Source: Marsupella aquatica (taxonomy: Eukaryota > Plantae > Marchantiophyta). From it: DNA of 64,000 bases. Shown here one piece after another: positions 6,546 to 52,900 of the stretch (its first letter is position 1; each line of letters begins with the position of its first letter). Below the pieces are notes generated by a model. That model ran no database searches and was not told the DNA's origin. It worked only from the letters and a program-made list of their open reading frames with translations. The DNA lies in contig OZ316898.1 of assembly GCA_973895155.1 (NCBI GenBank), positions 4,823,079 to 4,887,078 of the forward strand, written 5' to 3'. The position numbers were made by a program, and so were the translations under genes.

Positions 6546-8496
6546 ATAAGAGCACGCCACTGTAACGACCGACCTCTCCATACGAGAACGGCCCGGCCGC
6601 CCGCACCGCCTCGTTACAGTAGCAACGCAGTGCGCGCAGCCGTGTGCTGTGGACAGTTACTTATGTGACTCTGGTTACTTCACCCCGAAAATCTTATTAA
6701 AAAGTGGCTATGAGAAGCTGAAGTTGGGGTCTAGGGTCTAGAGTGAAAACTCTAGAAGGTGAATTCTAGAGCCCCACCAGAATGTATTTCCAAAATATGA
6801 TCTAATATGCTGATTTTTGCCATTGTGTCTATTAACTAACGTTCAAAAAATGGGCATACAGGCTCGTCTGCACTATAAGTTGTTATCTACATCACATACA
6901 TGACATATGCAGTAGACTGAAGCAATACGTCTTCATTTATCTGGTAACATTCTTTACAGATTTAGATCATGCTTGTGAATAAGGACAGACATGGGGAGCT
7001 TGTTCTGTGCATACCCACGTGTGTTTGGGCTAATTGAACAAACTTTGTAAGTTGCCATCCAAACTCATTTGAGCGCCTATCAAGTTTTCATTAAAATTAA
7101 TTGTCTACTGTGTCTCATGGATCCTCTCATTTCAACAGTGATAGTCACAAATTACTAGGTAAGTCGTTGCCTTTCAACCTAGGGGGCAACTTACTGGTTA
7201 AATTGGTTTTGGGGAGCAGTTGGAGATTTTGTGCAGATTTGGGGGCAATTTAATTAAAAAGTGTGTGTCAACTCAGACCCAATTTTGATCACCCTGAGTG
7301 TCTATAAAATGGATGTCTGAAATTGGAGCTCCCACAAACCAAAATGTATGAAAATTACTCTCATTTTCACTTTTGTACATTTACGGTAGAGAGGCAATGA
7401 GCATAGTTTCACAATGTCGCATGCAAATATGATATATTAGTATCTTAATAAAATTATATTCATATGTATGTCAGAGCGGGAAGCTTGGATGGACATAAAT
7501 GTTTGACTTACTGCCAAATGGACACAAATGTATCGCTCAAAATTCACACTTGTTTCCATAGATGACTATTTAGCATGCATTTGACAGGTACTAGAAGGCT
7601 TTAGTGGATTCCTCTAGTATTCTATCCATGTAGGAGCCTCCATTCTCATTCAACTGAGGGAGCTGGGTTCCTTTGGTTACCATGGTTACCATGTATATAA
7701 CCTATCACACCTCCATAATATCATGACATTGTAAGGTTCTGGGAGTATGGTGACACTATTAAGTTTCCAAGTAGCAATGTCAAACTTTTGTGTCCATCCA
7801 AACTTCCAAGTAATATATATTATGTGTGCAAATATGTGTGCAAATACAGAACACCGGGTGATATAACTGAAATAGGCTGCAGGCAATAAGAAGACTGTCC
7901 ATAGCTCACATTTCAGTCAAAAGTGTAAATGTTGCCATTGGAGTGAATTTCAACATTTTGAGCGATTCCATCCGGGCTTCACGAACAACGTCTTGGTCCA
8001 CGGGAGCCTTAGTTTCCCTCTATTGTATCCCCAAAAAATCATTTTGAATCTTTGAGCAATTTTTGGACAACACAAGGTTTGGACTTAAAGGATTTTCCTT
8101 AGTATAGAAAATCTTCCAAACCTTATGTTGAACTCAAAGGATTTTCCTTAGTATAAAAAATCACATTTTTTGGGTCTCAAGTTGCTAGGTCCATCCAAGA
8201 ATTGACGCGTCGAGTTCCATGTGACCCATCTCCTCCCTTCTCGACTCCTGTCTCGACACGCAGCGGGCAGGGTCAGGGTCAGGAACCAGGGCGGGCAGGG
8301 CAGGAGGGCCCGGAAGCCCGGAAGCAAGGAACAAAGGTCGGTCAGTCAATGGGAAGGCGGGGCGACCATTTCTTCCTCTCACGCTCTTTTGCTTCTGACT
8401 CGTCGCCCTCTACAGCAGTGTCCATTCCTACGTCCCTGTCTCGTCAGCTTGTGGCACTACTCAACTGACGGGAAGGCAGGCAGCCCGGGGAGACTC

Positions 8497-9070
8497 TCCT
8501 GGGGACAGGGCAGGCAGGTAGCCATGGCAGACATCGATTCAGCCAAAAGGGCAGCTCGGGCACAGATAGTTTTACGGACAGGGCAGGCCGGGCAGATATC
8601 GATGTAGGCACGGTCGAGATCGATTTATGGACGGGGCAGGCAGACGTCGAGTTGGGGACCGGGCAGACATCGATGTAGGGACGAGGTACATAGGGAAGTA
8701 CGGGCAGGAATAAATTTAGGTTCAGGGCAGGACGGGCAGACATTGATTTAGGGACAGGGCAGGCCGGTAGAGATCGATTTAGGGGCGGGATGGGTCCGGC
8801 AGACATCGAGTTGAAGAATAGGCAGGCCAGGCAGACATCGATTTAGGATAGGGTAGGAAGGGCAGACAACAATTTAGAGAAGGGGCAGGCCGGGCAAACA
8901 TCAATAATTTGCGGACGAGGCAAGCCGGGCAAACATCAATAATTTGCGGACGAGGCAAGCCGGGCAAACATCAATAATAATTTAGGGATGGGGCAGGCTG
9001 GGCAGACATCGACTTCGGACGGGGCAGGCCGTGTAGACATCGATTTAGGGACAGGGCAGGCGGGGCAGGG
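8497..9070 (+). repeat. G-rich degenerate tandem array, ~30-36 bp unit (consensus ~GGGACAGGGCAGGCCGGGCAGACATCGATTTA), ~15 copies
   Basis: Recurrent gggcagacatcgatttagg / ggggcaggccgggc. Exact 35-bp duplications at 8889-8978. Probably TE-derived. Confidence 0.8.
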
Positions 9071-10422
9071 ATCGAGCCAGCCGACCTTTTTGTCGCCCTG
9101 TTTCTTGTTCGTGTACACTGTACAGTATCTATCATCCCAAGCATGGGGTGGGGGTTGGCGAGCGGGCAGCACAGGCAGACCGCAGACACCGAGCATCTGG
9201 AGCCTGGAGGGGCCCGGAGGGCGGGCAGACATCGAGTTGGCGATTTACCCGCCCTTTGTGCGCCTTTCATCCGTTCAACAATCGCGGGTTTCGCGGTGGC
9301 ATGGGCGTTTTCAATTCTCAACACGCACTCACAGAGGCGAAACCTTGTGTTTGTTGCTGCTGACCTTCTTCTTCTACTCTTCTCCTCTTCTCTTCTCTCT
9401 CGCTCTCTCTCTCGCTCGCTCTTCGGAAGGTGCGCCACCAAGGTAGGGAGAAGGACGAGAGGAGGGTAAGGAATGCGAGCTCGAGCTGCTGCTGCAATCG
9501 AAAGACTACGAGCAAAATAATCAAAGGACGTCGTCGGACAGACAGATTGCTCGGACCGACTCTCACTGTACTTCTTCTTCGCACCGACCGACAATCCGAG
9601 ACCTGCGCCACCCCCGTCTTCGATTCTTTGGATTCTTTGGATTCTTTCGATTCTCTCTTCGGGGTGCCTGTCTTCGCGGATTGCTGCGGTGGTGAACAAA
9701 ATCCGCAGCCTCTTCCTCCCATTCCCGTCGTTCCATGGGCTGCACCCACATTTGTCTCGGACGAGGTGTTTGGTAGACCTTCTTCACTGATCCGAACGGA
9801 GGAGAAACAAGCAGCAGAGTGCGGAGGAGAGTGGACGAAACGCGGAGGGCGAAGAAGGTCAGATTTTGCGGATTGGCAATTGGGCGAAGCTTTGAGGAGG
9901 GATGGCTTCGTGGAGATAGATAAGCTGTCGCAGGGCAGAGTAGGGCAAAAGTTGCGCAGGCAGGGGGAGTGTCCGAGGTGTGCTGGGCACCGGGGCTATT
10001 TTTTGCAAACTGAGAAAGGAAGCGGAGGGACTGAGAAAATTCGCACCGTGGCCACTGCTCTCAACGCCGGACGGTGATGTAAGACGCTCATAGTAAGTGT
10101 GGCTCGTCATCCATTCGTAACTACTATCATCTGGGTGTCTGCTCAGTTTTAAAGACATTTTCTCAGTGTCGATGGAGGATGGATTTTGAATGCAAGGACT
10201 CGGGCAATTGGCTTGTATTTTGTGTGTGGAGGGGAGGGGAGGGGAGGGGAGAGTCTCAAGAGAAACTGAGAAACTGATGACTCCGGCGATGGGGTTTGAG
10301 TGCGTCTTCCCATTCAGCAAGGAGGGATTGTCAGCGAGCATTTAGTTCGTCAGCCTGTGACCTTCAGACAGCTGATCTTGGACACGGTGGTGATTGCTTT
10401 GGGGTTTCGTGGCGCAGGAAAA

Positions 10423-13202: not shown

Positions 13203-14072
13203 TGATTTTTATTCATACGCAATGTTTGGACTGGATCTCATCTTACAGGAGACGACTATCTGAGGTTCTAGCAGTTCCTAGTCCGTCAGAAATTTATTAC
13301 TGGACCAGTACTGACTCATGTCAAGATGTCCAAGTTCCTGATTGCAGAGGTTTTGTCGAAGTCAAAACACTAGAGTCTGTTGGGGGGCCATTTGCTGTAA
13401 GATCATCAAGCATTTTTCTGGCTAGTCAGTCATTCCCTTACAAGTGTTTTGCCCTCTACCTTGAATATATTCCAACGGGAAGTTTGAGAGTCTGAAGTTG
13501 GTGCTACATTCACTAACTTAGCACACCAGAGTCTGCCGTTAGGGGTGCATGGGCTGACTAGTCACCTTCTCAAATCCCTTGGACAGATTCCCGCCTACTC
13601 CGAATGTTTTCAAGGGGATCAATGAAAATTGCTTTAATCTCCCTTCTTCGCCTCCTGTGTTCACATTCTTGATTTGATGTGTAATTGATGGTATTTGATG
13701 TCCAATTAAGTACTCTCTTTCACAGAAAAACAAGTTAAAGAATTCCTTTAATCGAAGTCAGCGCGCTTAGCAAATGAGAGTGCTCTCGACCAAAAAGCAC
13801 TATATTGAAAAGCACTAGGCATCGATAACAGATAGAAAACTTGATAATGTGCGTCAATTTTATTGTTGTCAATAAAATTTAGGTTGGTGGATGTGATTGT
13901 TAAGAGGATTCCAGCACTTCTATATATGCCTAATCACTCCCTCTGTTTGCCTCTACTATGGGTGTAATTCATGCACACAACCTTCAAACCAGGCATACCA
14001 TTTGTATTGGACAGATAATCTATAATCTATTCCAAATGACAATTGGTTTGAGCTCATGTTCAACATAGGCGG

Positions 14073-14360
14073 ACCCATTTGTGGTGGACTCATGATCTGC
14101 AATCTTTTCCAAATGAGGACTTATTTGAGTTCATTTACAAGCTGCAAGAAACTAACAAATAAGAGTACACATCTGGTAGAAGATACTAACAAATAAGGGT
14201 ACACATCAACCTATGCGTACCCATTTGTGGTGGACTCATAATCTATAATCTCTTCCAAAAGAGAATTATATGAGTTCATTTACAAGCTGCAAGCAACTAA
14301 CAAATGATGGTACACATCTAGTGTGGTACACACCTAGTGTAAGGAACTAACAAATAAGGT
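14073..14360. repeat. Tandem duplication, ~146 bp x2
   Basis: acccatttgtggtggactcat...gagttcatttacaagctgcaag.aactaacaaat at 14073 and 14219. Confidence 0.85.
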
Positions 14361-21988: not shown

Positions 21989-22141
21989 AACTTTGGCTCC
22001 TTCATTGGAGGGATTTGCATTCATTGAATTTCATTCAAACAACTTTGGCTCTTCATTGAAGGCATTTGCATTCATTGAATTTCATTCAAACAACTTTGGC
22101 TCTTCATTGAAGGCATTTGCATTCATTGAATTTCATTCAAA
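21989..22141. repeat. Tandem repeat, 51 bp x3
   Basis: aactttggctcttcattgaaggcatttgcattcattgaatttcattcaaac repeated. A degenerate fourth copy lies near 22235. Confidence 0.9.
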
Positions 22142-22504: not shown

Positions 22505-22650
22505 TTGCTTGAGGGACCCCAAAATGAATTGCCTTACTTGATAGTACCCCTGAAATTCTGGGTATGGTGATTCAAGGTCAATCAACCGGTCTGGATCACT
22601 CAGGGGTCCTATCAAATAACACTTTTCATTACGGGGTCCCATCAAGCAAA
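22505..22650. mobile_element. Foldback MITE, copy 1
   Basis: ~50-bp imperfect inverted arms (ttgcttgagggacccc... / ...ggggtcccatcaagcaa) around ttcaaggtcaa...ggtctggatcactcagg. Homologous to 28229-28383. Confidence 0.65.
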
Positions 22651-28228: not shown

Positions 28229-28383
28229 AGGGTTCTGCTTGATCAGACCCCAAAACAAATTGCATTACTTGATAGGACTCTTGAAGTTTTGGGTACATTG
28301 ATTCAAGGTCAACCAACGGTCTGGATCACTCAGGTCCTACCAAGTAACACATTTCATTTGGGGTCTGATCATGCTAGAGCCCT
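28229..28383. mobile_element. Foldback MITE, copy 2
   Basis: Arms agggttctgcttgatcagacccc... / ...ggggtctgatcatgctagagccct. Same core as 22505-22650. Confidence 0.65.
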
Positions 28384-31300: not shown

Positions 31301-31732
31301 CGGCTCTCAGGGGTTCTTGTCTGCTTCAAGTGCAGCTTGAGGAGTTAAGTACACCCTAATCTGAAACAAACTACATTCCACAATTACAAACAATGCAGGT
31401 AACCACACCATTCTGGTAGCTAAGGTGTCTACCCTTGTTAGATGAATGATATGAGGATGTGATTGCTGCAGCAGAGTATTTGCACCCCAGCACTTGAGTC
31501 CATTAGAAATTAACTGGTCTTGCCCAGGGGACATTTCACTTGAGGACCCATTTTGCCATTAAATCCACTAATCAGAGTACCTAAAAGTTTAAACCGCAGC
31601 CTCATATTGAAATGAAGATCTCCAAGTTCACACAAGTAAGTTGAGCTGTCTATGTGTTTCCAATTCTTTGGATTTCCAATTTGATATAGATTATTGAATC
31701 ATGATCTCCATATTCTAGTTGGTCATTGATTG

Positions 31733-31908
31733 TGTCGTGACATATAGTATTGTAGCCATAGTGTATCAAAAACATACAAGTCACCGGCAAGGCATATGTG
31801 CAAGCTGCTAGCAACCAACATGCATAGAAAAAGTCCAATCACATTCACAAGTGCCAAGAAAAAGCAAATGAAGTGGTATGTACGTAGTGGAGATGTAAAC
31901 CTCTGTAT
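31733..31908 (-). repeat. Split direct repeat unit A (176 bp), 3' terminal copy
   Basis: Direct repeat of 32270-32445 (offset 537). Ends the element in ...CACGACA. Confidence 0.97.
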
Positions 31909-32267
31909 ATAAAAGGCGTAAGAGAAACAATTGTACTGAAATCAAATCGAAAACCGGCAGGATGCCAAGATCGGCCGGGAGCATCTAACGAATCACTGTG
32001 TGAATCCCGTGTACGGAACCGACGAGCACTGTCTGAGCTCTGTCAACAGCGATTCAAGAAGAACTGAAAAATCCACAAAGAAAGACATGCCCTAAGCAAG
32101 CAAAGTCCTGGCGTCACACTAACAAGCACATTTGCTTCAAGAACGGCCCAGACTTGCTACAAGAACATGTCGCTAACTCAGGTAGTACACTAGCCCTAAC
32201 TACATACCTAGCGGGCAGACGAGGGACATGTCGATGTGCATAAGAGGCACTGTCCCTCGGCATGACA
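31909..32267 (-). repeat. Split direct repeat unit B (359 bp), second copy
   Basis: Direct repeat of 41149-41507 (offset 9240). Confidence 0.97.
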
Positions 32268-32269
32268 GC

Positions 32270-32445
32270 TGTCGTGACATATAGTATCGTAGCCATAGTG
32301 TATCAAAAACATACAAGTCACCGGCAAGGCATATGTGCAAGCTGCTAGCAACCAACATGCATAGAAAAAGTCCAATCACATTCACAAGTGCCAAGAAAAA
32401 GCAAATGAAGTGGTATGTACGTAGTGGAGGTGTAAACCTCTGTAT
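32270..32445 (-). repeat. Split direct repeat unit A (176 bp), inner copy
   Basis: Matches 31733-31908 with 2 substitutions. Separated from B by the dinucleotide GC (32268-32269). Confidence 0.97.
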
Positions 32446-32452
32446 CCCCCCC
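32446..32452 (-). promoter_or_regulatory. Polypurine tract (G7) for plus-strand priming
   Basis: GGGGGGG on the minus strand immediately abutting the inner A repeat, ~30 nt after the polyprotein stop. Confidence 0.7.
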
Positions 32453-32494
32453 AGACCACAGCCAAAAGGAGGGCTGAAGAAAATTCAGGTAGCA

Positions 32495-32645
32495 CGTGGA
32501 GCACAAGAAGGGCAAAACCATAACCCTTGTGGCACCTGGGTAAGTTCAGGCCGAAGGCAGAAACGATGGTACCCTCCATTGCAATTGTCACACAACAGCA
32601 TCTGGTCAGCATCATCAATTCGCAAACACACCTTGCAAGGGTAGT
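32495..32645 (-). other. PHD finger at the C-terminus of integrase
   Basis: DYPCKVCLRIDDADQMLLCDNCNGGYHRFCLRPELTQVPQGLWFCPSC is a C4HC3 finger with the hallmark W before the last Cys pair. It is in frame with integrase across the TAG at 32887. Confidence 0.95.
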
Positions 32646-32886
32646 CCACAGGTGGAATCCAAGTAGAAGTCACAATGGTGGGATCTAGGTTAGGCAGATG
32701 ACAAGGGGCGCAGTTCTTGGCATTGTCAGCAATTGTGCGCCCATCTGCCCCTTGTAACTCTAGCACTCCAGACGGTTGAATAGCTTTAACCCTGAGAATA
32801 GTACGACTGGTAGAGGTGTCCAGGGTGTCGTTAGCTTGCCGCTGCAAGTACACAAAATCTCCCACATCAAACTTCCTGACCTTGGG

Positions 32887-33825
32887 CTAAAAAGTGCCAC
32901 CTCGTGTGTGTGCATAACGCAGTGTGTCCCTGTGCTGTGCAATGGTCAAATTCTCCATGGCCATGGGCATAACCCTCCTGAATAGGGCAGCCCTCTCAGA
33001 GATCACATCAGACCAAGTCACAGCTGAATCCAAGTCCACCACCTGAAGCATGTGAGCAGCAATAGCAGAAGGTGGAACTGGGTGACGACCAAACAACAAG
33101 AAGTAGGGAGAAAAGTTAAATAGTGATGCATGTCTGGACATCCTATACCCCATGGCAATGTAGGGTAAGGCCAGGTCCCAATCCTCCTTGTTTTTGGTGA
33201 GGCACATCTTCCGGAGACCCTTCTTGCATGTCTGAACCATGCGCTCTGCCAAGCCATCTGCTTGTGGGTGATCTCGTGATGTCCGGCGATGATCAATGAG
33301 GGCCTGATCAAGCAGCTCCTGGAACTCTCCTCTAAACTCTGAGCCCTGGTCAGTGAGACATTCTGCACAAGCTCCAAAGCGGCTGAGAACTTGTTGCAGG
33401 AATGCCTGGCTGGTGCTACGGGAGGTCTTATCCGGCAATGCCACAAGTTCTATCCACTTGGAGAAATGCTCTATCATGATCATGATGTAGAGATTACCCC
33501 GAGATGTGAGGGGTAATTCTCCAGCCAAATCACATGACCAGCGATAAAACATGCCCTGAATAGGGAGTGGATGAAGTGTGGGTTGCCGAGATGTGAAAGA
33601 AGTCCTCACCCTATCACACTGTTCACACCGGGCAATAACATCTCGAACCTGGCCATGCATGCCTCTCCAATGATAATGAGGGACCAAGAGGCTGTAAGTC
33701 CTCTTAACGCCAAAATGACCAAGCTCAGAATGTACCTTACGGATAAGGCCAACCCTCTCATGAATGGGTGGAACCACCACTTCCCTGTCTGGCAAGCAGC
33801 GCACAAGATGATCTCCCTTCCACAA
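32887..33825 (-). other. DDE integrase with HHCC zinc-binding N-domain
   Basis: HSELGHFG...CEQC; WSCDLAG (D), LTDQGSEF (D), DGLAERMVQT (E); SPYFLLFGR (GPY/F-like). Confidence 0.95.
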
Positions 33826-33989
33826 GTAGCGCTTGGACCTTTGCTGAATTCAGTCTCTCTGGGCAGCAGTAACATGTGTGGGGTACTCCCCATGCTGCAG
33901 AAATCTCAGAGTGTCGTTGTCCTCCCATATGTCCACCACAGGTTGGTCAACAACATAGCATGGCAGCAAAGCAAGATAAGTCGATGCAT

Positions 33990-35463
33990 GAAATGTAGGC
34001 AGGATGGAAACCTGGTCAAAATCTTGCCGTGCATCTGAGGAATCATCAGAGGTAATCAAAGGGCTGCGGGACATAGTGTCAGCATTCTGATGTGTCACAC
34101 TAGGCCTATGAATTACCTCAAAATCATACTCCTGGAGTATGAGCGCCCAACGAGCAAGCTTGCCAGTAAGCTTGTCGTTGGTCATCAACCACTTCAAGGG
34201 CTGGTGGTCGGTGTAGAGAACAAACCTGGTCCCATAGAGGTAGGGCCTGTAATGTATGACAGCCCACACAACAGCAAGGCATTCACCCTCATAAGAAGAA
34301 TAATGACTCTTTGCCTGATTGTTGCTCCTGGATGCAAGGGCAATGACGTACTCTTTACCTTCCTCATCATGCTGGCCCAGAATGGCACCAATCCCAAGGG
34401 CACTCCAATCTCTGTGTAGCACACAGACCTTGCTGAAATCAGGTCTTCTCAGCACCGGGTATTCTGAGAGCTTCTCCTTCAAAGTGACAAATGCTGCCTC
34501 AGCATCTGTACTCCATGTCCAAGTCACATTCTTTTTCAACAAAGCATACAATGGGTGTGCAATGGTACTGAAATCTTTGATGTAGATCCGGTAGTAATTG
34601 CACAACCCAATAAAACTCCTCAAAGTGTGAACATCGGTAGGAATGGGCATTTCCAAGATGGATACCACCTTGGCCCAGTGAGCCATGGTTCCATTTGGAA
34701 GAATGCGATGCCCAAGATATACTACTGATCTGACAGCAAATTCACACTTCTTGGGGTGTATCTTTAGGTTCACCTTCTTAAGCCTCATGAATAGCTCCTC
34801 AAGGTCAAGTAGATGCTGGTCAAATCCTTTGCTATGGACCAACACATCATCAATGTAGCATTTCAGAAACTCAGCACCTTGAAGAACCTGATCCATGACT
34901 CTTTGAAAGAATATGGGCGCATTCTTCAAGCCAAATGGCATCACCAACCACTCCCATAGTTGGTTACTACCATGGAAAGCTGTTTTCTTGCGGTCCTTTG
35001 CAAGCAGCAAAATCTGGTTAAAGCCTTGCCTTAGATCCACAAGAGTGAAGATGTATGAGTCTCCAATGCTGTCAAATAGCTCCTCTGGCCGTGGCATGGG
35101 GTACCTGTCCTGGGGTGTGACCAGGTTCAGTGGCCTGTAGTCCTCACACATGCGCTTCTCTGTCCACAATCCACTGGAATCCTTCTTTGCTGGCATCACT
35201 GTAGCTGCTGCAAAATCTGATGTAGATGGCTGAATAAGACCAGCTTCATAGAGCTCTTGGCATCTCTCATCCACCAGCTGCCACTCATGCTTACTCAAAC
35301 GGTGTCTCCGCCTGAAGATAGGTGTTTCATCAGCCAACTCAATGGAGAACTGCATAGTCTTGCACTTACCCAAGTCCTTCATAGAGAAAGCAAACACATT
35401 CTCATGCTTGAGGAGCAAATTCAGCAGTTGGTCCTTCTGTCTTTTACTCAGGTGGTTGCCCAT
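33990..35463 (-). other. Reverse transcriptase and RNase H domains
   Basis: RT: KRMCEDYRPLN, DLRQGFNQI, VMPFGLKNAP, CYIDDVLVHS, YLGH. RNase H: DWSALGIGAIL, YSSYEGECLAV, YTDHQPL, HQNADTMSR. Confidence 0.96.
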
Positions 35464-35819
35464 GATGAATGTGTAGTTGGCACACTAGGAATAGGACCTG
35501 ATGTACTCGTGCTTGAAGAGCCAGAAGTGCCAGCCTCTCCACTGTCCAAGCTGCTAGCATGCTGCTGATAAGGTGATGAGGCCTCTCCAAGGCCTGCTGT
35601 ATCTGTTGCTCTGGTCTGATCCACACCATGAAACTCAGAAATAATGTCAGCCACATTACAAGGGACCTCCTCCCCCCCAACACTTGGACTGAAGTGGTGA
35701 GTGTTGGACAGAGGTAAGTGCACCTGGTCTGGATGCCATGTAGCAGCACCATGGAGTGGTAGGGCTGGCACTCCTGATGCTGGATGAATGTACATCTGAA
35801 AAAGGATGCAAGTGACCAG

Positions 35820-36740
35820 AAGCCAAGTGAGAGCATTAAGATCCATTACCTTGCCAAGTAAAGCAATCCTGGCCAGCCTGGTGATTTTGGTGTGACCTGT
35901 AGTACCGGGTTGGAAGCCCATAGCCCGTTCTCTCTCCTCAGGACTAGGTTCATCCCATGTACCGGTAGAATGTCGATAAACCAGGCCAGGACCATCACCC
36001 TGAAAAGCATGTGCACCTAGAAAGGACACAAAAGTAGGCCAAGCAGCACGGGGCTGTCCAATGGTATTAGCTGGATACCAAGGTGCTGGCTCTTGCCGTG
36101 TAACCGGTTGGCAAGAACTGTCAGGATCCAAAATCTGGTCCACTGTGAGGTTAGTGTCTCTGGATGTGTGGTGAAGAGCTAACTCCAACAAGGAAGGTGG
36201 TGCAAGGTTAGTCCAAAAGTTACGAAGACGATGTGCATAAGAACCACAGTGCACTGCATCAATGAGAAGGGGTGGTCCCAAGTAGTGCTGGACCACATTG
36301 AAATCCTCTTTGACCTGGAGATGGAGTATTCTCAATGATATAACCAACAGCAGGATAAAGGAATTGAGCCCAGGTGAGAATCTGAACCAATGCTGTGAAA
36401 AGGCCAGAACGAGAATCATGCAGTCTAGCACCGTGACCAGCAGCTGAAAACCCTTGGCATTCCCAACCAGCTATGATCAAATCAAGGGAGCCAAGAAGGG
36501 TTAAGTGCCGGTGCTGGACAAGCTGGATGTCTGGAGGGAAGAAAGAAAATGCGGACTTCCATGCACTATGTGGAAACTGCTGGGGAAATCGCTCAGAAAA
36601 TTCCAGCAGACGGGATTCAGCCACTTGCCTTGCACTTGGATCAATGTCCACGTAGATGTACTGCTTCACCACCATGCCAGACTGTAGGAGAGCTTCCAGG
36701 CCTGTAGAAATGCCACCAAAAAGCTCAAGCAATGTAAGGC
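35820..36740 (-). other. C5 cytosine DNA methyltransferase domain (DNMT3-like, non-permuted motif order)
   Basis: Motif I LLELFGGISTG, II YIYVDID, IV IIAGWECQGFS (catalytic Cys at 36457-36459), V DSRSGLF, VI YIIENT. After the frameshift: VIII SYAHRLRNFWTNL, IX PEERERAMGF, X ARIALLGKVMD. Confidence 0.9.
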
Positions 36741-37079
36741 CATCTGAAGGAGGAGTCCATTTAACTGGTGCGCTCAAGATTGGGGCTATTGGCTGTCCAT
36801 TGTGCTGCCCAAGGTCTTCAAACTTGCGCAATGCAGCCACCAAAGGTCCATGGGCTGCTTGGAGCCGTTGTACCACCTCTGGTTGATGATCCATGTTGCT
36901 GGAAAGTGCTGCTATACGTGCAGCAGCATGTGCAGCAGCCACCTCATCGTCATCCTCCTCAATCCAATCTTGCAATGGGTGGTTGACATAGGTAGCTGTG
37001 TGCACTGCTTTCAACACATAGTGGTGAGCCATAGGTGTATGGGCACCATGCAAATCAAGTGGAATGTAGCCCAAGTGTG

Positions 37080-37460
37080 AGCCATCCGTATGCCAATCAA
37101 CTCTGTAGTATGCATGCTCATGCCAATTGTCAATGGTAAAACCTGGTGGGAACAAAGCCTCCTGGCCAATGAGCACATCATACGTAGTGGCATTGGTAAC
37201 CAAACATCTGACTGGGAAATGCAATTCCTGATCTGTACCTCCATTAAAAGTGAGAGTGAGTAAAGTAGAACTCTCACCCAGCACATCCTCCACAGTGCCA
37301 CTAGCAGTCTGAATGTGCCACCTGGATTGCTGTAAATGATCAGTCAACAGTCCCATCTTCTTGGCAAACTGAATGCCCAATATCACTGGTTGAGCACCTG
37401 TGTCTAGCATGACCACCTGAGGAGTGTGACCCTCCAACTTGACCACTGAATTCCTGTTGT
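37080..37460 (-). other. Retropepsin aspartic protease domain
   Basis: VMLDTGAQPVILG catalytic motif (D at ~37403), flap IQTASG, and YDVLIG closing motif. Confidence 0.88.
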
Positions 37461-38579
37461 CAACAATGGCAATGGTGGTGGAAACTGAAGTCCTATCACT
37501 AGGCACCACTCTCGGCAAATGATGAGGTACCTTGTGAAGGGAGTTAGTATCCATGGTCTTTCCACTCAACAACATAGCCAGGAAAGATGGAGCAGCATGA
37601 CCAGAATCAAGTGTAGCTCTGGTCACACAATCAGCAGCAATCGGTACTGGGGCAACCAAACCAGTGGAAACATGTAATGGAGAAGAAGAAGGTCCACTAT
37701 GTACATGAGATTGGACCTCCAAAACCGGTGTCACAGGGGCTGATGAAGAATGCAGTGAACCCTCTAGCGCTCTGATGACAGCTCTAGCATCCAGCTGTAA
37801 ATCATGGCAACTGAAAAGTGGAGTTGTAAGAATCCTTTGTGCCATACCGGAGGTGAAATGATCAAGCAGCTCAGGAGAAACAACTCCTTGTGAAATGTTA
37901 GCAGCACCTGGTGGTGGAATGGATGTAGTTGTAGCTCCCTCCCCCCTCGCCAACAAGGTGCGCTCTTCAGCAAGTGTGAGTGGCTGAAAAGATTTGGGCA
38001 GGACAGCCCGAGCTCCCCTAGCTCTAGTCATAGGACCAGCAGCAAGACCATCAACCTGTACAATGCGGCGTGTGGGAGCAATACGGGAGGCAGCACTGGC
38101 CTGCTGGTAAGCAAAATAGGAAGGGCAGAATGAATCTGAAAATTCTGCTGTAAGGCCAGGCTGTGTAGCAGAGGATAGCACACACTCACCCATATGAGCA
38201 TCAAATGGCAAGCCATAGAAAGAGCGGGGTATGGGTGTTGAACTGTCAGTGGTGCCTGGGCCAGGGATGGGTTGCACATGACCAACCGGTTGAGAAGGAC
38301 CAGCAGAGGCAGTTGACTTGCCTTTGATGTTGGCAAGTTGGGCACGTAGGGACTCAACCTCATGAGTCAGAGACTGGAGTTGAGTTGCCTGTGCGTTGTG
38401 AGCCTCCTTCTGAGTTGGTTGCTTCTGTTGCTGCTTGGGCGGTTTGTTGGCACTGGATGCTTTGCCACTGGAAGGAGGAGCAGTTGATGCAGTAGGAGCC
38501 CTCCTAGCTGGTGGGGGAGTGGAAGCAGGAGCAGGAGGAGGGGCCTGCTGTCGTAGCTGCTTCCTCTCTGGGAATTTGG

Positions 38580-39834
38580 CAAAACAAACTGCCTCCAAGT
38601 GACCCACCTTTCCGCAAAAATCACAAGACAGGTCCTCAGCAACAATATCACAGTCATTAGCCTTGTGATTGGGGTTACCACAGTAGTTGCAAGATGGCAG
38701 CATGAAAGCAGCATGGGCTGGCTTGGTCTTGGAACCATACTGTGGCACACGGGAAGGAGTGGTCAGTGTAGGGGCAGCAGCCTGGTACCTGGATCGCGGT
38801 GGACGTGCAATACTGGCCTCATAATGTGCATGGGCCAACTCAAGTTTCTCAGCAGTGTCATAGATATTGAGCAGGGTGTAGCTATCTCCAAACTCTGAGA
38901 ATACTTGCTGCAACACTTGCGAATGGAGAGCTGGTGTCCCCTCCAATGCGCGAAGATAGCGATGAGCAGTTTCCAGATCAGTGATGCTCTGGGTGTCCTC
39001 CTTCAGCTTGAGAAGCCGGCGATACATCATCTTCAATGTTTCATCGCGCTGCCTCACAAAGGTGGCCAACTGCATGATTTTATCAGCACTCTTGATTGGG
39101 AATTCCAATTCAAGAACCTGGAAAAACTCAGCCACTGGATCAGCAAAGGTAGGGGAATCAATGGTCGGAGAAATGCCTGATGTAGCCTGTGCCAAGACAG
39201 TGGGAGTAACTGGCGCAGTGGTGGAAACTAAAGTAGGAGGGGAAGTGGCAGGAGCAGCAGCATGGGCTGCAATGGCATTCTGTAAGGCCAATTGTGAGGC
39301 TGCCGTAATTGCACTGGCATAGGTAGGGTTAGGCAACTGTGTGACAGCAAGCAGCCGTTGAGAGTGCTGCTCATACACATCCAACGCCTCATGGTGCACA
39401 TACCTGGCTAGCTACTTAAATGCAAAAGCATTTGTGAAATTGCTGCCATACTTCAACTCCAATTCATAAACGACAGTGTAGAAAGTGGATTTGAACTCAC
39501 GTAAAGAGACAGTGCCTGGCCGCCCGCTGAAGCGCTCAATGCGGCCAGATGAGTGGCTAGCATCCATGCTGTATGTCGGTGAAGCTGGAACAACCACTGA
39601 TGCAGAAGGGGTAAATGGCAATGAAGTGATAGCAGGCTTTGAAGTAGTGGTGAAGCGACCGCCAAATGTAGCAGAAGGATTGCGTGGTGTGGGTGCTGCT
39701 GCTGCTGTCTGCTGATGTCGTCAAAATTGCCGAGGCTCCAATGAAATTGGCACCAATGGTCGTGGATCACTCCGTAAATGGTACCTGGATGTTGGTGGCG
39801 ATGTGCTACTACCTCCTGGCTCCTCTGCTGACAT
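38580..39834 (-). other. Gag region with two CCHC zinc knuckles
   Basis: CNYCGNPNHKANDC and CDFCGKVGHLEAVC (CX2CX4HX4C). Upstream capsid-like helical region (ERFSG...FVRQRDETLKMMYRRL). Confidence 0.85.
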
Positions 39835-41136
39835 GCTGTGGTGTCCTTGCTGGATCGACGGTCTGATGTGTATGCCGGGCCTCAACCTTATGTAGATGAC
39901 ATGTGGCGGCAGCAAAGAAATTGGGAAAATATGGGAAAATATGGGCCCTATGCAACGGTAGTCGAATACACTGGGCCCCTCTTAAGTGTATACACATTTG
40001 GGCCCCATTGTGGACCCGGAAACTGCAGCCAGACCGGTCGAGTGTGTATACACACTCGTAGCACACGGCCCTATGCAGCGCTAGTCGGACGGCTATGGAA
40101 AAGTCGAGGAGTCACTATGGCCGGCGAGGGAAAGAAACGGGAGGGCACGATGCCCTATGTACATACTGCGGAGCACAAAAGGCGTAAGGAGGAAAAGGCA
40201 AGACGCAGCGTGGCAAAGGCGAAGTAAAGAGATGGCGAAAAGGGCGAAAAGAAAAGCATCGGGCCCCCATAGAGGGCTGCGAACTCCCCCCTCCTCTCGT
40301 GCAATGTAATTTGGGCTCGTGCCCTGGCAGGAGCACTCCCGAGAAGGGAGTCGACTTAACTCCCCTCCCCCTTTAATGCTTCATAGGGCCTCGTGCCCTC
40401 TCCTCTCGCAGTCTCGCTTCAACTCCTCCCCTTCGTTAATGCTGAATGGGGCCTTGTGCCTGGCAGAAGTGTGAGTCCCAAGAGGAGGGAGTCGAATGTA
40501 CTCCCTCTCCTCCTTTTAATGCAGCATAGGGCCTCGTGCCCTCTCCCTGCGCTCCTGCCTTCGCTCCCCCTCCCCCTTCTTTAATGCTGCCTAGGGCCTC
40601 GTGCCCTCTCCTGGTGCTCCTTCCCCTTCCTCTGGCAGTCTGGCTGCTTAGAAATGGGCGAGGCAAGGGCACGATGCCCTATGCACAGCCTGCACACCAA
40701 AGCGGAAGGAGGTCGAGAGAAAGAGAAGAAAACAGGGCCCCCAAAGGCGAAAACGTAAAGAGGAGGCCGGGGTGGAAGCGTGTCGAAATGAGGGCACACG
40801 GCCCTATGCAGGCGTCTCGCTGCAACCGAGGCAAAACTCGCCGGCAGCTGTGGCCGGGAATGCGAAAATGGCCCCAAAAACACAAGCGGCAACAAGCGGC
40901 AACAAGCGGCAGTAACAGTAAGAAGGAGCAAATGGGGTCGCGGATGCAACCAGAAAATGAACTCTGGACCTCCTCGGGAGCATTGATATGTGTATACACT
41001 TAAGTATACACATAACAACATAAACCCATAACTTTCAACTCGTCGCTCCGATGTTTGTCGAAGAAATTGCAATGGCTTCACCAGAAATTATCAAAATCAT
41101 CACGAGCAAGCTTCTTTCCCTCACTGCCAACTCGGG

Positions 41137-41150
41137 AGTTCTTCTTGAAT
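41137..41150 (-). promoter_or_regulatory. Putative self-priming primer-binding site
   Basis: Minus-strand ATTCAAGAAGAACT directly at the inner boundary of the 5' B repeat. It is the perfect complement of AGTTCTTCTTGAAT (41305-41292) inside B. No TGG-type tRNA PBS is adjacent. Confidence 0.7.
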
Positions 41151-41507
41151 AAAAGGCGTAAGAGAAACAATTGTACTGAAATCGAATCGAAAACCGGCAG
41201 GATGCCAAGATTGGCCGGGAGCATCTAACGAATCACTGTGTGAATCCCGTGTACGGAACCGACGAGCACTGTCTGAGCTCTATCAACAGCGATTCAAGAA
41301 GAACTGAAAAACCCACAAAGAAAGACATGCCCTAAGCAAGCAAAGTCCTGGCGTCACACTAACAAGCACATTTGCTTCAAGAATGGCCCAGACTTGCTAC
41401 AAGAACATGTCGCTAACTCAGGTAGTACACTAGCCCTAACTACATACCTAGCGGGTAGGCGAGGGACATGTCGATGTGCATAAGAGGCACTGTCCCTCGG
41501 CATGACA
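41149..41507 (-). repeat. Split direct repeat unit B (359 bp), 5' end of element
   Basis: Matches 31909-32267 with 7 substitutions, all transitions. Confidence 0.97.
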
Positions 41508-43174
41508 ATTGAAAGTTGTGGAGCTTCCCCTTTTATGGGCATAGTAGCTTCAAAGACTCCCCATTGCATAGCATTGAATTGAAGTTTTTCACATGTTCAG
41601 GCACACGTTCCCATTGTCCAATGCTTATGTAGAGTGAGTCCAATCGTAGCCCATTAAGCTCACAATGTCCTAAGCACGGATGATCACTTTCCACCTGAGT
41701 TTTTAACTCACATTGAATGGCCCTTTCCAGTAAGCCAGATTCTGTCATCTTCTCCTTATTAGCCAAATGAGGCCTCCCATAGAGCGGACCAGCTTTTTCA
41801 AAGATGACATGACAGGGTGCAAGTTCTAATTAGCAGCTTCTCGATGTGGACTAACAACACGATAATTCATTACATAAGCCTCATTATGATATCAGAACAT
41901 TACTAGGTACTTGTCAAGCAAGTCCCAAGGTACTTATGAAATAAGTCCCTATATGCATGCAACTTCTGCTTTTGGGGATGATGGAAGAAACTCAGGAGTT
42001 TATTGAGTATAGAGTGTGCACAGAGCCTGAGAACCAGACCAGATATATACTGTGATAAGTAGAAGAAGATATCTTTGAATACATCATTCTATGGGAGAGC
42101 CATGTCCCCAACAAAGCTAGAGGAAAATTGTAGGCAAGAAAAACATGTTGAGGAGTAGCCAATGCAACTTCAGGAGGCCACAGTCAATGCTTAGGAAAAC
42201 AACACAACCAAAGTTTTAAACAAAGTCAATACTCTGGCTGTCTTAGAATGATACAAAATTTACACAAGTGACTTTAAGAAGATGCTTCAAATCACCTACA
42301 GTAGGCTATGTCCAAAAGAAGAGGAGAAAGTAAAGATGGTTCCTTCCTTTCCCTGTATGGCCTGGTCAGTGTTACTTTTGTTACCTCTTTTGGGGCAAAC
42401 CCTATGAGACCATTGCCCGCCTACAACATTTACTGTTAGGTGATTGGGTCAAGCTTCAGGTGGAGTACTACAATTGGGTTGGTGACGATTGCATTGCGGA
42501 CAACTGTTTTCCACGAGGTGCCACAAATACCTCTTGTCCGGCGTCATCACTCTGTCAGAGCCTCATGTTAGGAAAGCTAGTGAGTACTCTAGGGCAGCGC
42601 GCTCTTTGGTTTCCCTCTCACCTGCCTATGCATCTGAAGATATCATTGCAGCCCTCGAAACTCATCATGCCCCGAGGGCAGCTGAGGTTCCAACGGGGTT
42701 CCAGGCTTTGTAAGGAGTGTCTTGCTGGAGGATTAATTAGTTTTCCCTATCTCAGGAAATTTTGACTTCTGTCTTCCTTCTTCTGCCGTGACTTTTAACC
42801 AACGGCATGTATGGGATAGGTCGCAGCATTTGCAGGATTGCTTTCTTCCAAATGACTTAGCATCCTGGGGGGCCTGGATTTTCTCAGATTTTCCAAGTGT
42901 GTGCCCATGTTGTGGGCCATTGCAGGGGGGAGTATCTCTCCTGCAGTTGCTCAGATCTTTAGAGTTAGCCTACTTTTGGCCCTGGCCAAGAAGCCTGTGG
43001 GTGATCAGCCTCTAACTTGCAATTGGGGAGGTTTCATAACGGAGATTTAGTCAATTTTTGCCTTAAAACTTGGTCACAGTTTTCATCTCACTTTTTCTCT
43101 CACCAATATAGTGTGGCCACCCATGAGATTGTGAAACTTTAGTTCCTTTGCGGTTGTGAGGGACTCTTGTGCAT

Positions 43175-43428
43175 TTTGGCTCCTTGATCTCCCTGGGCTT
43201 TCCCCCTAGTTTTCTTGCCTTTCTTGGGTCCCCTATCTTTAGGATATGGGCATTTGGGCTCCTTGCAAGACTCCTTGATCTCCCTGGGCTTTCCCCTAGC
43301 TTAGTTGCCTTTATTGGGTCCCCTATCTTTAGGATATGGGTAGTTTGGCTCCTTGGAAGGCTCCTTGATCTCCCTGGGCTTTCCCCCTTGTTGTCTTGCC
43401 GTTATTGGATCCCCTATCTTTAGGATAT
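43175..43428. repeat. Tandem repeat, ~90 bp x3
   Basis: ctccttgatctccctgggctttcccc...cccctatctttaggatat recurring at ~43230, 43320 and 43411. Confidence 0.88.
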
Positions 43429-44326
43429 TATCCCCCTGGTTTGGAGCTCCATGTTTGTTGGCACTGTGATATATACTGCAGCCCATGTTCATCGAATAAT
43501 TCTAAGACACCGTAGCAATATCTTACAAATGATCAAAAGCTACCATAATGATGAAATTCAAGTGTATGTTTGAAGCTCGCATTATAAAGTATATTGTGAT
43601 TACTATGGTTAGGAGGCCAAAGGTGCACAAGGATAACTAAGGGGGTTGATTGCGTTAAGACAGAAAGGATCTACTATAAAAGTTAGTATAGTAGGGGAAC
43701 CTCATGCAAGCAATCATTAGAACATATATAGAAAAGGCATAATTCTGTGTAAATCTTAGCCATTCTTGTTCTAAAGAAGAATTCCATGTTGTGAATCACT
43801 CCATACTGATTTGACGATGTCATGCCAGGTAATCCGATAATTTATAAAGTATTTAAATTTGTATTTCATTTTAATTATTATAGAAAATTATGCTCTCGAT
43901 CATATTCCTTGGTAGAGGGCACTCAAAATCTATTGATTTTATCCTCCTCTGGTAGCAGCTCCAGCAGATTTTGAGCGACCATGTTAGTTAATTATTTACG
44001 CAAAAGCATCAAAAGTTATCTTCACAAACCCTGATCTTATCAGTCACAATGGTGAATAAACAAAACATAAAATCTTATTTCTCTACAAAAGAGTACTACT
44101 TGAAAAGAACGCCAAGCCTAGATGTACCTCTATGCTGGACACAATGTTCTGGGGATCACATTTTGGTGGTCTATGAGAGTTTTGGGCTTATAATTTGATG
44201 ATTACGAGTCTTAAAATATCTTTAGTTTTTCACTTGCAAGACAACTAGAGAAAGAGGAGACAATAAAAAACTCAAGGCTCACTAATATTTCATATTAATA
44301 TAATGAAATTAATCTAATATAACTTA

Positions 44327-44433
44327 TCTCTCCGCATTCCATGATGAATAACTCAATCAAAATGGTAAACAATTCATTTTCTCTCTCCACATTCCATGAT
44401 GAATAACTCAATCAAAATGGTCAAAAATTCATT
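44327..44433. repeat. Tandem duplication, 55 bp x2
   Basis: cattccatgatgaataactcaatcaaaatggt repeated. Confidence 0.85.
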
Positions 44434-49977: not shown

Positions 49978-52900
49978 ATGACGATTTGCCCCTTCAAGCT
50001 GAGACTTTCGAGCTGTGGCGCAGGCTGGTGTTCGTCGACGACGGTCATGAAGAGCAGCAAGTCGCAGCAGAACTTCACATCGACGGTTTATAATCTGTCA
50101 GACTACCTTGAGAATGAACATGTAGAGGAAGGGGCAGGAGTTGTTCTAAGTTCGAGTGGCAACGCTCGAAAGCAGATCTACTTGGATGGTGACTCAGTGG
50201 CGAAGAGGAAATATGAAGATATGACTTCTTGTGGAATTGAAGACGTTGAAGCTGAGATCCATCATGAACAATCGGGTAAGTTCAGTTACTTTAGAGAACA
50301 TAAGAAGAGAAGGCCGCCCGAAGCTGGCAATCCAATGCAATTTCAAACAATTTCTACCACTCCTGTGCAAGTTGAGGGAGTCCAACGGGAGGTCGACGAG
50401 CTTCAAGTTAGGTTGTCAGAGATTTCACGAAGGTCTTGTTCAGTTTCGGGCGTAGAGGTAACTCCAGATATTTGCGGGGGAGAATCCGACTTGACGGCTG
50501 AAAATCAAATGGCAGAAGAAAGCTCAAGATCGAGCAATAATTATGGGTCTTCGATGTTTGAGAGCGCCGCTGAATCGGTTTCAAAGGGACCAATCACGGA
50601 GTTTCGATCCGTTTCTAGCTTAGGAGTTATGCATAGCTTTATGGAGCGCACACACCATGGAGGGAGGGGAGTCAGTGTGATTACATCTAGCGAAGGACCG
50701 GGCCAGATGAGCAGTTTACTTCTTGGGAATGATGGTCACAATACTACGCTGAACGACGCGAACGACGGTCGGGAAGGCGTGAGCAAATCCGAAACAGCAG
50801 CTAGTTATCAGCTTGGATCAGGATCTTCCGAGGCGCCTTCTTTCGTAAAAAATTATACAGCTCCATCCCAGCTTCGGGGAAGAAGCAATCAAGGGTGGTT
50901 ACAACTAGGTGTTGGTAGTAGTTCGGGGCGGCAAACGCCAGCTACACTAAATGTTTACTCGGAGCTCGCTTCGGGTGAGGAAGGTCAGCCTTCGACATTG
51001 AGACAAGACCTCCATGAAGAGAGATCAATTTTCAAGCGGAGGATTACATCGATCGACTTTCCCGTCGCTGCAGACTGTGAAGCAAATAGTAATTATGTCG
51101 TCCCTGAACACTCGAACGCTTCACCAGGTGAATGGCATTTTACAAGGGTCTCGAATGGCATTCCCCCTAAATTTGAAGTGTGCCCCAGTGATCTCTCAGG
51201 TAACCTGAATCCAGCTACGCTTCGGAGTATACCCATTTCTAGTGTGATGAGGAATTTGGACGCTGCCTCGGAAGCGGGAGAAGCTGTAGAACAATCGGAT
51301 TTGTGTATTGGTCGGACGCTTGTCCAAAGAGGCACAGCAAGGCAGGAGCTCGTTTTGGCCCCTCTCAATTGCACAGGGACTGCGGAATGGGAGAACGAAG
51401 GACAGGTGGTGAGCATAGATAAAGCGTTTGAGCTGCGCAGAGATCAAGAAGGCTTTCAAGCTGGCAGGTTTCCTGATCCTAGAGGTGACCGCTTCGGCAG
51501 TGCTTGCCCGCGAGGTCCGGAAATTCACAACGGAGCACGTATCTCGCTATCGACACCAATTACGGGCGTTAATCTTAGATCAGCACCAGCTGCCGCGGCT
51601 GCAGGGCCATCAATGGGCTATGACACTTTCCAATATCACAGAGATAATCCACCTAGCTCTCTCTCCGATTTGCAGCAGAGAAGAGAAGATCCACGTCATG
51701 GCCATCTAGGATTTTCGTGGCTACCTCCACCCGCTGCCGACTCGGCCCCTAAGCTAATACCAACGGCAAACAACTTTCAAGGGTGGATCTCTTCTGAAAT
51801 ACCCTCAACTACGAAATTGACTGCAGCATTGAGCCCCAGTAATGCACGAATGGACAATCCACCCAATCAACAAGCGACGAGAGGTTTGGATGAATGGGGA
51901 ACTTTGTTCAAAGAAGTTGGTCCCAAAATGCTGATTCAATCTTGTCGTGACCTAAGTTCAGAAGGCTCCCCAGCCTTAGTTCAGTCTGCACGTCACGAGA
52001 CGAGTGTCGGATCACAAGAGAATTTGGTGCCTTTCAAACGGGCTATCGAAAACATTCAGAAAGGGCCTCAATGGCCGATTCCGCGAGAAGCCATGAACTC
52101 GATCGCATCTTGGTGCGTGAATGGAAATCTCCAAGGCGTCAGAGGTGAGTCTAGTTTTGAAGGTGACCCTTTGAATCTGAGCGAGAAGCCACCTCAGAGG
52201 CAAAGCTGGCAACCAGCCGGCGGACAGACGTGGCTGCATCATGAAAATGTGACCGCTCTTCACAGACCGGTTCCTGAAACTGCAAGAAAACCCAGGTCGC
52301 AAATGCTTCCACCTGGGTCCATGGGGACGAGTCATGCGGGACTTTGGTTCGTTCTCCAATCTGCAGAGAATCAGTTAAGATCAATTCAACCCTCAGTCTG
52401 CTCTTCAGGGATCGATGTGCTTACTTAATTCTAAACTCACAATTTCTCGTGTCAGTGCGTTGTTTGACATGCATGTGTTTGTTGGGACCATCATGAATTT
52501 TTCGTTCCAACAGTTACAAAACTGTACACGAATGTTCGGTTCTAGCTGCAGCGGTCAAATTGCTGACAACCTTGACCTTTCGCGGTCCTGTTGACAGCCA
52601 TCATTCTTATGCGATATGCGTCAGAATGCAAATTTCGTAAACACGGACGTTTAAGCTACATTCTCATAATGACTCGTAGGAAGTCTTTAGTCATGCAGAA
52701 TGCTGAGTTCCTGTGGACGTATCCGAGCTCAGCTGTCCAGAGTACATGATGGTTAGGCTGATTGGATCTATAGTTTGCAGGCATATTCCAAGTAAGTTAT
52801 GTGGTCCACGATCCATTGCCTTTAGATTCTACTGTTTTCTTGTGCGGATAGATATTGCCTAAAATTTAGTCAACTTACTCGTGACATCTTCCTGCGATCA

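Follow-up and report, generated by a model that had tools for sequence, protein, structure and literature searches.

Some retrotransposons present a paradox: they carry the kind of enzyme normally used to silence them, a cytosine-5 DNA methyltransferase (MTase). Such elements were first described in 2018, from dinoflagellates and one charophyte alga (de Mendoza et al. 2018, PMC5890265). The charophyte example, KnitGypsy-Dnmt3 of Klebsormidium nitens, has a DNMT3-related, non-rearranged MTase in the open reading frame (ORF) of a Gypsy-type Pol, and there is evidence of purifying selection on that MTase (PMC5890265). Its repeats are ordered A-coding-B-A-B, 'the same as that of a DIRS retrotransposon', around a Gypsy domain set (Fig. 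4c legend, PMC5890265). Here we analyse a Ty3/gypsy-like retrotransposon with a DNMT3-like MTase in a 64-kb stretch of DNA from Marsupella aquatica (contig OZ316898.1, positions 4,823,079 to 4,887,078), which we refer to in its entirety as the window.

The Gypsy-DNMT3 kind has thus been known since 2018, and the window element is a land-plant member of it, not a new kind. It shares with KnitGypsy-Dnmt3 an MTase in a Gypsy Pol, a streptophyte host, A-coding-B-A-B repeats and apparent purifying selection on the MTase; it differs in that its host is a land plant (a liverwort) rather than a charophyte alga, and in that the window copy is dead. Physcomitrella and Selaginella were the sole non-seed land plants in the 2018 survey, which included no liverwort (PMC5890265), and a 2026 preprint again lists 'streptophytes (Gypsy-DNMT3)'. 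A preliminary description of the locus had pointed to a Klebsormidium precedent, which is KnitGypsy-Dnmt3 (PMC5890265), and had known of no characterised land-plant case. We likewise found neither a land-plant Gypsy-DNMT3 element nor any other paper naming KnitGypsy-Dnmt3 in full-text searches of the literature outside subscription journals. What is new is the host lineage, together with details that we did not find described: the 4-bp target duplication, a palindromic repeat junction, a PHD-finger tail, two Pol layouts and a Glu-Cys (E-C) form of motif IV.

A second described system, SymbioDIRS-Dnmt3 of Symbiodinium, resembles the window element in having a DNMT3-like domain in Pol and split direct repeats, and there too two domain orders coexist (PMC5890265). 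As a DIRS element, however, it encodes a tyrosine recombinase and a reverse transcriptase of DIRS type, in contrast to the window element with its DDE integrase, aspartic protease and 4-bp target duplication.

Our reading, to which we assign a probability of about 0.8, is that a single, defective Ty3/gypsy-like element of the Gypsy-DNMT3 kind is inserted in the window, and that in intact members of this kind the MTase is a complete DNMT3-type domain that serves the element. The streptophyte Gypsy-DNMT3 kind thereby extends to a land plant, and its relatives show the kind to be widespread in green algae, with two domain orders that are separated on the MTase tree, peculiar termini and a PHD-tailed integrase. 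The elements offer material for testing self-methylation in lineages with well-studied host methylation machinery. They also carry a warning for annotation, as some bryophyte and algal 'DNMT3' gene models are fragments of transposon Pol.

A Ty3/gypsy-like element with a methyltransferase in Pol

The element spans 9.8 kb of the minus strand (41507-31733). Pfam domains give it the layout gag(CCHC)-protease (PR)-MTase-reverse transcriptase (RT)-RNase H-integrase (IN)-PHD, and the CCHC-bearing gag, the PR-RT-RNase H-IN order and the DDE integrase bear out its earlier designation as gypsy-like. A 1,046-residue ORF (39399-36262, minus strand) contains a CCHC knuckle, an aspartic protease and then a C-5 DNA_methylase domain; RVT_1 and RNase H lie in ORF 35463-33853, Integrase_H2C2 and rve in ORF 33825-32890, and a PHD finger in ORF 32865-32488, all on the same strand.

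The MTase occupies 36740-35820 (minus strand), after the protease and before the RT, as the preliminary description had it. Its motifs span 36729-35835, where that description had put them, and the Pfam family PF00145 matches the window ORF above its cut-off (24.3 bits against 22; E = 2.5e-5), with scores of 26-32 bits in relatives. Contrary to the earlier claim, the motifs are not in frame throughout: the N-terminal half is read in the gag-PR frame and the C-terminal half in another, and a second shift leads back to the RT frame. In total the reading frame of the window copy is broken six times, by two frameshifts, both around the C-terminal half of the MTase, and by four premature stops. The window copy is therefore dead and cannot make Pol or the MTase. 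The gag start was placed at 39834 by alignment to a relative, L001 (described below), and the coding features are as follows.

39835-41148, minus strand: leader of 1.3 kb, from the first terminal repeat (X1) to the gag start, with an imperfect tandem repeat within it at 40341-40605
37444-39834, minus strand: gag region, with zf-CCHC at about 38694-38647 (Pfam) and the N terminus aligned to L001
39723-39721 and 39414-39412, minus strand: two premature stops in gag
37153-37443, minus strand: aspartic protease (DTG); Pfam gag-asp_proteas, 29.9 bits, and Asp_protease_2
36319-36740, minus strand: N-terminal half of the MTase, with motifs I, IV and VI, in the gag-PR frame; PF00145; 75% amino-acid identity to L001; best Protein Data Bank (PDB) match DNMT3A
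36300-36320, minus strand: first frameshift, directly after motif VI, with a gap of ~17 nucleotides relative to L001, at about 36318
35820-36317, minus strand: C-terminal half of the MTase, with motif VIII (HRLRNFW), the target-recognition region and motifs IX and X; its frame is not that of the N-terminal half
35470-35484, minus strand: second frameshift, back to the RT frame, at about 35478
33853-35469, minus strand: reverse transcriptase and RNase H; Pfam RVT_1 1.3e-28, RT_RNaseH 1.2e-34
33852-33850, minus strand: premature stop that splits RNase H from the integrase
32890-33849, minus strand: integrase, with H2C2 zinc finger and DDE core; Pfam Integrase_H2C2 2.3e-14, rve 5.4e-14
32889-32887, minus strand: premature stop that splits the integrase from the PHD tail
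32488-32886, minus strand: integrase C-terminal extension, which contains a PHD finger (about 32637-32503); Pfam PHD 2.3e-12
32487-32485, minus strand: natural stop of the integrase/PHD extension

The leader duplication at 40341-40605, which lies inside the stretch between X1 and gag, is an imperfect tandem of ~125 bp, 79% identical, and the ORFs on both strands there are without a family match.

The element had been called young. This holds only for its repeats, which differ at 9 positions in 535 bp. The ratio of observed to expected CpG falls to 0.27 in the coding region, or 0.39 if the whole element (31733-41507) is taken, compared with 0.58-0.70 in the flanks, and TpG/CpA is in excess. All nine differences between the copies of the X and Y repeats are transitions, four of them at CpG. 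The CpG depletion and the transition-only decay fit a methylated, silenced and decaying insertion, and judged by this pattern the window copy would be one.

The methyltransferase is closest to DNMT3

The two halves of the window MTase were searched separately, and were joined with an X at the break for the tree alone. Six of the conserved motifs lie at the following positions.

36729-36700, minus strand: motif I (SAM binding), LELFGGISTG
36471-36445, minus strand: motif IV, AGWECQGFS, with the catalytic Cys in GWECQ
36339-36325, minus strand: motif VI, IIENT
36236-36204, minus strand: motif VIII, AHRLRNFWTNL
35939-35913, minus strand: motif IX, EERERAMGF
35861-35835, minus strand: motif X, LLGKVMDLN

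Searches of single sequences against the PDB, a profile of the family and a predicted fold all bear out the DNMT3 resemblance that had been proposed. For the window halves, DNMT3A and DNMT3C alone rose above noise, and the alignments take in the DNMT3-typical stretches PVMIDA..AHRARYFWGNL and EMERVFGF...SRLARQRLLG. A 275-residue piece of L001 (motifs I-VIII) matched DNMT3C, DNMT3A and DNMT3B with E values of 2e-7 to 1e-5, and M.HhaI with 7e-3. The profile built from an alignment of 38 family members gave 2.8e-24 for DNMT3A, ~2e-21 for DNMT3B, 1.6e-14 for plant DRM, 9e-9 for M.HhaI and 3e-4 for DNMT2; DNMT1 and CMT did not match it at E ≤ 1e-3. An AlphaFold model of the MTase domain from an intact relative, L005, has a predicted local distance difference test (pLDDT) score of 93.3. 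All the Foldseek matches listed for this model among the top 50 ranks are DNMT3A, DNMT3B or DNMT3C, with a best E value of 4.7e-18 and template modelling (TM) scores of 0.79-0.83 on the target, over an alignment of ~332 columns.

Motifs I to X are colinear with DNMT3A and DNMT3C, in the canonical, non-permuted order given by the preliminary description. The circular permutation of DRM, with VI-X before I-V, was not found, and DRM chains match the family profile only in part (positions 68-209). Among the 38 aligned members there is almost no variation at the catalytic Cys, at the Glu of motif VI (E152), at the Arg-x-Arg of motif VIII (R192, R194) or at the glycines of motif I. The window copy has retained the first three of these, together with motifs I, IX and X.

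Mammalian DNMT3A, DNMT3B and DNMT3C are the best match to the window MTase, colinear with it from motif I to motif X and sharing the C-terminal stretch ERERAMGF ... RLAR..LLG. They differ from it in sequence, at ~20% identity, and have SPCN where the window has GWECQ. They also differ in context: the window MTase is part of a retroelement polyprotein, without adjoining PWWP or ADD domains, and the PHD finger is far off, at the C terminus of the integrase. Pfam finds no PWWP or ADD beside the MTase, whose neighbours are the protease and the RT; a 2025 survey reports that the companion domains of DNMT3 differ across eukaryotes.

Sequence, family profile and the fold predicted for an intact relative all place the MTase nearest to DNMT3A, DNMT3B and DNMT3C. 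We are all but sure that the window carries a DNMT3-like domain in a Gypsy-DNMT3 element.

Relatives keep the domain in place and under constraint

A search of 1.84 billion cluster representatives returned 2,207 matches at E ≤ 1e-3 and 197 clusters at E ≤ 1e-30, many of them in the middle of polyproteins of 1,600-3,400 residues. The named matches in the homologue and cluster searches were to Closterium, Mesostigma, Haematococcus, Chromochloris and Hariotina, and Klebsormidium was not among them.

The relative designated L001, an ENA metagenome contig, aligns to the window over the whole coding region at ~73% nucleotide identity. It is a single frame of 2,515 codons with the layout gag-PR-MT-RT-RH-IN-PHD (MT, MTase; RH, RNase H), and its sole lesion is a stop at 4124-4126 inside the MTase, where the window copy has a sense codon. 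The frame-shifted MTase segment of the window remains colinear with L001. L005 encodes an intact polyprotein of 2,327 residues, with the MTase before the RT. The MTase has this position also in L002, L004, L006, L007/8 and L009, additional copies of which most have decayed. The domain thus lies at the same place in the independent assemblies L001, L002, L004, L005, L006 and L009.

Between the window and L001, the MTase shows 75-83% amino-acid identity and a nonsynonymous divergence (dN) of 0.13-0.20, compared with 74% identity for the protease, 81-85% for RT and integrase, and 47-52% for the linkers (dN 0.39-0.47). The ratio of dN to synonymous divergence (dS) in the MTase is ~0.06, a value that is indicative only because dS is saturated (>2, and undefined in two segments), so that the contrast between domains alone was used. 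On this contrast the MTase appears to be constrained to a degree comparable to the protease, which points to purifying selection on the domain; neutral decay of the MTase alongside a conserved RT and integrase was not seen. Because the family seems to keep its MTase under purifying selection, the domain would serve the element rather than being mere cargo.

In one of the decayed relatives, L002, the element adjoins a decayed Ty1/copia element at 900-4900 (Retrotran_gag_2, rve, RVT_2), and the L002 contig is eukaryotic repeat-rich DNA.

Split terminal repeats and a target-site duplication

The preliminary description had the element flanked by a target-site duplication. The duplication was confirmed, as CAAT at 41511-41508 and 31732-31729. 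The termini are not plain long terminal repeats (LTRs): two complete identical LTRs are not present, and the 5' end consists of X alone and the 3' end of Y-X-Y. In the coding orientation the order is X1-coding-Y1-GC-X2-Y2, a plan of split direct repeats.

41508-41511, minus strand: 5' target-site duplication, CAAT
41149-41507, minus strand: X1, 359 bp, starting with TGTC, 98.05% identical to X2
32270-32445, minus strand: Y1, the internal copy, 176 bp, 98.9% identical to Y2, with a G run directly before it
31909-32267, minus strand: X2, joined to Y1 through the palindromic junction GACA-GC-TGTC
31733-31908, minus strand: Y2, the terminal copy, ending with GACA
31729-31732, minus strand: 3' target-site duplication, CAAT

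The ends of the element read TGTC...GACA and so have TG...CA termini. The G run that abuts Y1 is in the position of a polypurine tract, and a primer-binding site complementary to a tRNA was not recognised after X1, although no systematic search was made. The junction Y1-GC-X2 (GC at 32268-32269) has the appearance of a head-to-tail joining of the ends of the element, with two additional bases between them.

L006, an element of Closterium sp. NIES-68 flanked by a 4-bp duplication, AGGG, follows the same plan: its order is likewise X-coding-Y-X-Y, and it too has the junction GACA-GC-TGTC (L006 16447-16452). The palindromic junction in both the liverwort and the Closterium elements suggests that the internal copy serves as the template for the termini. 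Two other accounts, a plain LTR (X+Y or Y+X, with the 5' LTR truncated) and a linearised two-LTR circle, were considered and rejected, because the order and the junction recur in Closterium and the order is also that of the KnitGypsy-Dnmt3 figure legend.

Despite a repeat order reported as that of DIRS elements, Pfam shows no Phage_integrase in the window element; rve, Integrase_H2C2 and the 4-bp duplication are present instead. To the A-coding-B-A-B description, the window element adds a target duplication, that is, evidence of integrase-type insertion.

Two Pol layouts among relatives

Domains in the retrieved proteins were located using the window's own domains as queries. About 14 clusters have the order PR-MT(-RT-RH-IN), as in the window, and about 97 have RT-RH-MT-IN-PHD. 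Pfam agrees with the second layout for the proteins P0007 and P0009. For P0010 and P0014, it finds RT, RNase H, integrase and PHD without DNA_methylase, and the MTase was placed by the search of cluster representatives and the window-domain queries.

In a tree of 147 MTase domains without an outgroup, the RT-RH-MT-IN-PHD members all fall in one clade of 124 rows (SH-like approximate likelihood-ratio test, SH-aLRT, 98), and all PR-MT members fall outside it. This unrooted tree suggests a single relocation of the MTase within Pol. The named members with the PR-MT layout are Mesostigma viride, four Closterium strains and the window liverwort; those with the RT-RH-MT-IN-PHD layout are Haematococcus lacustris, Chromochloris zofingiensis and Hariotina reticulata. 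This suggests that PR-MT-RT is the layout of streptophytes and RT-RH-MT-IN-PHD that of chlorophytes, a division that rests on few named members, most matches being metagenome or Logan contigs.

The chlorophyte elements, with which we include many metagenome contigs, resemble the window element in their homologous MTase (39-48% identity, either with the liverwort-type domain or among themselves) and in their PHD-tailed integrase. They differ from it in that the MTase lies between RNase H and the integrase. The split-repeat plan may also differ between the two layouts, to judge from an element with the RT-RH-MT-IN-PHD layout on a 214-kb contig (L003 2429-16277), whose repeats are ordered Y, 1.26 kb, Y-X, coding, X.

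One 1,974-residue Gypsy-MT-PHD polyprotein, P0217, is named 'MAG: reverse transcriptase domain-containing protein [Minisyncoccia bacterium]' at NCBI. It is probably encoded by a eukaryotic (algal) contig that was binned into a bacterial genome.

A PHD finger on the integrase

Like the window element, L001 and almost all members with the RT-RH-MT-IN order carry a PHD finger; Pfam lists none for L005, the intact relative. The best PDB matches of the window PHD (32637-32503) are WSTF, CHD4, the first PHD finger of KDM5, BAZ2A/B, ATXR5, BHC80, AIRE and UHRF1. Most of these PHD fingers read unmodified histone H3. By analogy, our guess is that the window PHD would do so too.

A parallel to this arrangement is found in the chromoviruses, which also have a chromatin-reader module on the C terminus of a Gypsy integrase, where it presumably steers integration. 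There the module is a chromodomain rather than a PHD finger, and the elements have plain LTRs, whereas the elements described here combine an MTase with split repeats.

Catalytic activity, proposed mechanism and rival explanations

Intact members would make a single Gag-Pol polyprotein, gag(CCHC)-PR-MTase-RT-RNaseH-IN-PHD, and the MTase would be made and packaged as part of Pol. Its target for methylation could then be the new cDNA or the DNA of the insertion site. That the enzyme is packaged with Pol and methylates the cDNA had already been hypothesized by de Mendoza et al. 2018 (PMC5890265). The integrase may be tethered, through its PHD finger, to chromatin in which the tails of histone H3 are unmodified, and the rest of the integration complex with it; the DDE integrase would integrate the element, leaving the 4-bp duplication, and the ends would be regenerated from the internal Y-GC-X copy, as proposed for DIRS-like elements.

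In motif IV, the residue before the catalytic Cys is Glu instead of Pro (GWECQ) in the window and L001, as it is in ~76 of the scanned protein sequences, whereas ~36 keep the canonical GWPCQ. GWECQ, which most relatives have, is a trait of the family and not a product of decay in the window copy. Rare variants have S, L or C at this position. On the MTase tree the P-C and E-C forms are interleaved: in the RT-RH-MT-IN-PHD layout, the starred branches require the E-C group to have changed at least ten times. In yeast, in the only published test of such a domain, the one from Klebsormidium produced no methylation, a result that its authors called inconclusive, and motif X is reported to be poorly conserved in the K. 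nitens members (PMC5890265).

These observations (Glu for Pro, inactivity in yeast, a weak motif X) are what would be expected if the MTase were an inactive pseudo-enzyme like DNMT3L, kept as a scaffold that binds DNA or that recruits or blocks the host DNMT3 or DRM. Such a scaffold would not need the near-invariant catalytic Cys, motif VI Glu, motif VIII Arg-x-Arg and motif I glycines of the 38 aligned members, nor does it account for the canonical P-C in about 36 of the scanned sequences; human DNMT3B was likewise negative in the same yeast assay (PMC5890265). We consider a pseudo-enzyme improbable. The unusual motif IV, and the position of the MTase next to the RT inside Pol, could instead reflect an active enzyme with a substrate other than double-stranded DNA, namely the RNA of the element, an RNA:DNA hybrid or single-stranded cDNA during reverse transcription; RNA methylation has been proposed for the SymbioLINE DNMT (PMC5890265). 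However, the fold and motifs VIII-X are nearest to DNA-bound DNMT3, the tRNA methyltransferase DNMT2 matches the family profile far worse (3e-4 against 3e-24), and the DNMT3-like SymbioDIRS-Dnmt3 domains methylate CG in DNA in yeast (PMC5890265). A substrate of this kind is very unlikely.

The least probable account is that the domain is a one-off capture or an artefact: a trapped fragment of a host DNMT3, a nested insertion or a misassembly. The window does hold a single copy, and the domain is bounded by two frameshifts. The relatives refute this account, and we give it practically no weight: the same domain is in the same place in L001, where the frame is continuous, in L005, which is intact, and in L002, L004, L006 and L009; many of the 2,207 database matches lie inside large polyproteins; and the frame-shifted segment is colinear with L001.

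Our preferred reading, a defective insertion of an element whose intact members have a complete MTase that serves them, leaves room for different functions of the enzyme. The balance tips slightly towards intact family members being active DNA methyltransferases. That self-methylation of the cDNA is the selected function is a tentative proposal, and one that we place below even odds. More doubtful still is a wider picture, in which Gypsy-DNMT3 is an old green-plant lineage with split repeats that combines a DNMT3-type MTase and a PHD finger of a kind that recognises unmodified H3K4, as a mobile analogue of ADD-DNMT3. This lineage would have a PR-MT-RT layout in streptophytes and an RT-RH-MT-IN-PHD layout in chlorophytes and would persist into land plants, and its active copies, including those with the E-C form, would methylate their cDNA or landing site. 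If this picture were true, the element would arrive already marked.

Several points weigh against the preferred reading or parts of it. Kinship to KnitGypsy-Dnmt3 rests on common architecture, not on sequence alignment, and the assignment to DNMT3 on match scores and fold, not on a tree with reference DNMT3, DRM and DNMT1 sequences. Motif IV is E-C and not P-C in the window and most relatives, and the yeast result for the Klebsormidium domain, called inconclusive by its authors, was negative. The histone preference of the PHD finger is guessed from its nearest PDB relatives. The dN/dS values are rough because dS between the window and L001 is saturated, and the 64-kb window covers one copy from the source genome.

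Surroundings of the element

An exon at 49978-52425 (plus strand; 816 residues) belongs to a DRIP-like E3 ligase gene and has no Pfam match. Its best matches are proteins of Calypogeia fissa (54% identity, E 7e-182) and Marchantia paleacea (38%) and the DRIP E3 ligase of M. polymorpha (35%). These matches of a flanking gene to liverwort proteins identify the host as a liverwort, a land plant, and as no near relative of the three species matched. At 3349-3801 (minus strand), exons of a plant-type Snf7/VPS32 gene can be read through a short intron, and the product ends ...EDDELAALQAEMAL. Pfam found nothing beyond the Snf7 exon in the other long ORFs of the window, and a scan of the window with Rfam gave no match.

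A GC-rich region (0.55) at 8000-10400 contains overlapping ORFs of 140-240 residues on both strands, without Pfam matches, and an imperfect repeat at 8692-9010. Short tandem arrays occur in the flanks of the element at 43178-43428 (unit of ~90 bp), 21989-22141 (~51 bp), 44324-44433 (~55 bp), 14060-14319 (~146 bp) and 466-658 (~103 bp). A dispersed pair of 130-bp repeats, 83% identical, lies at 22506-22638 and 28236-28365.

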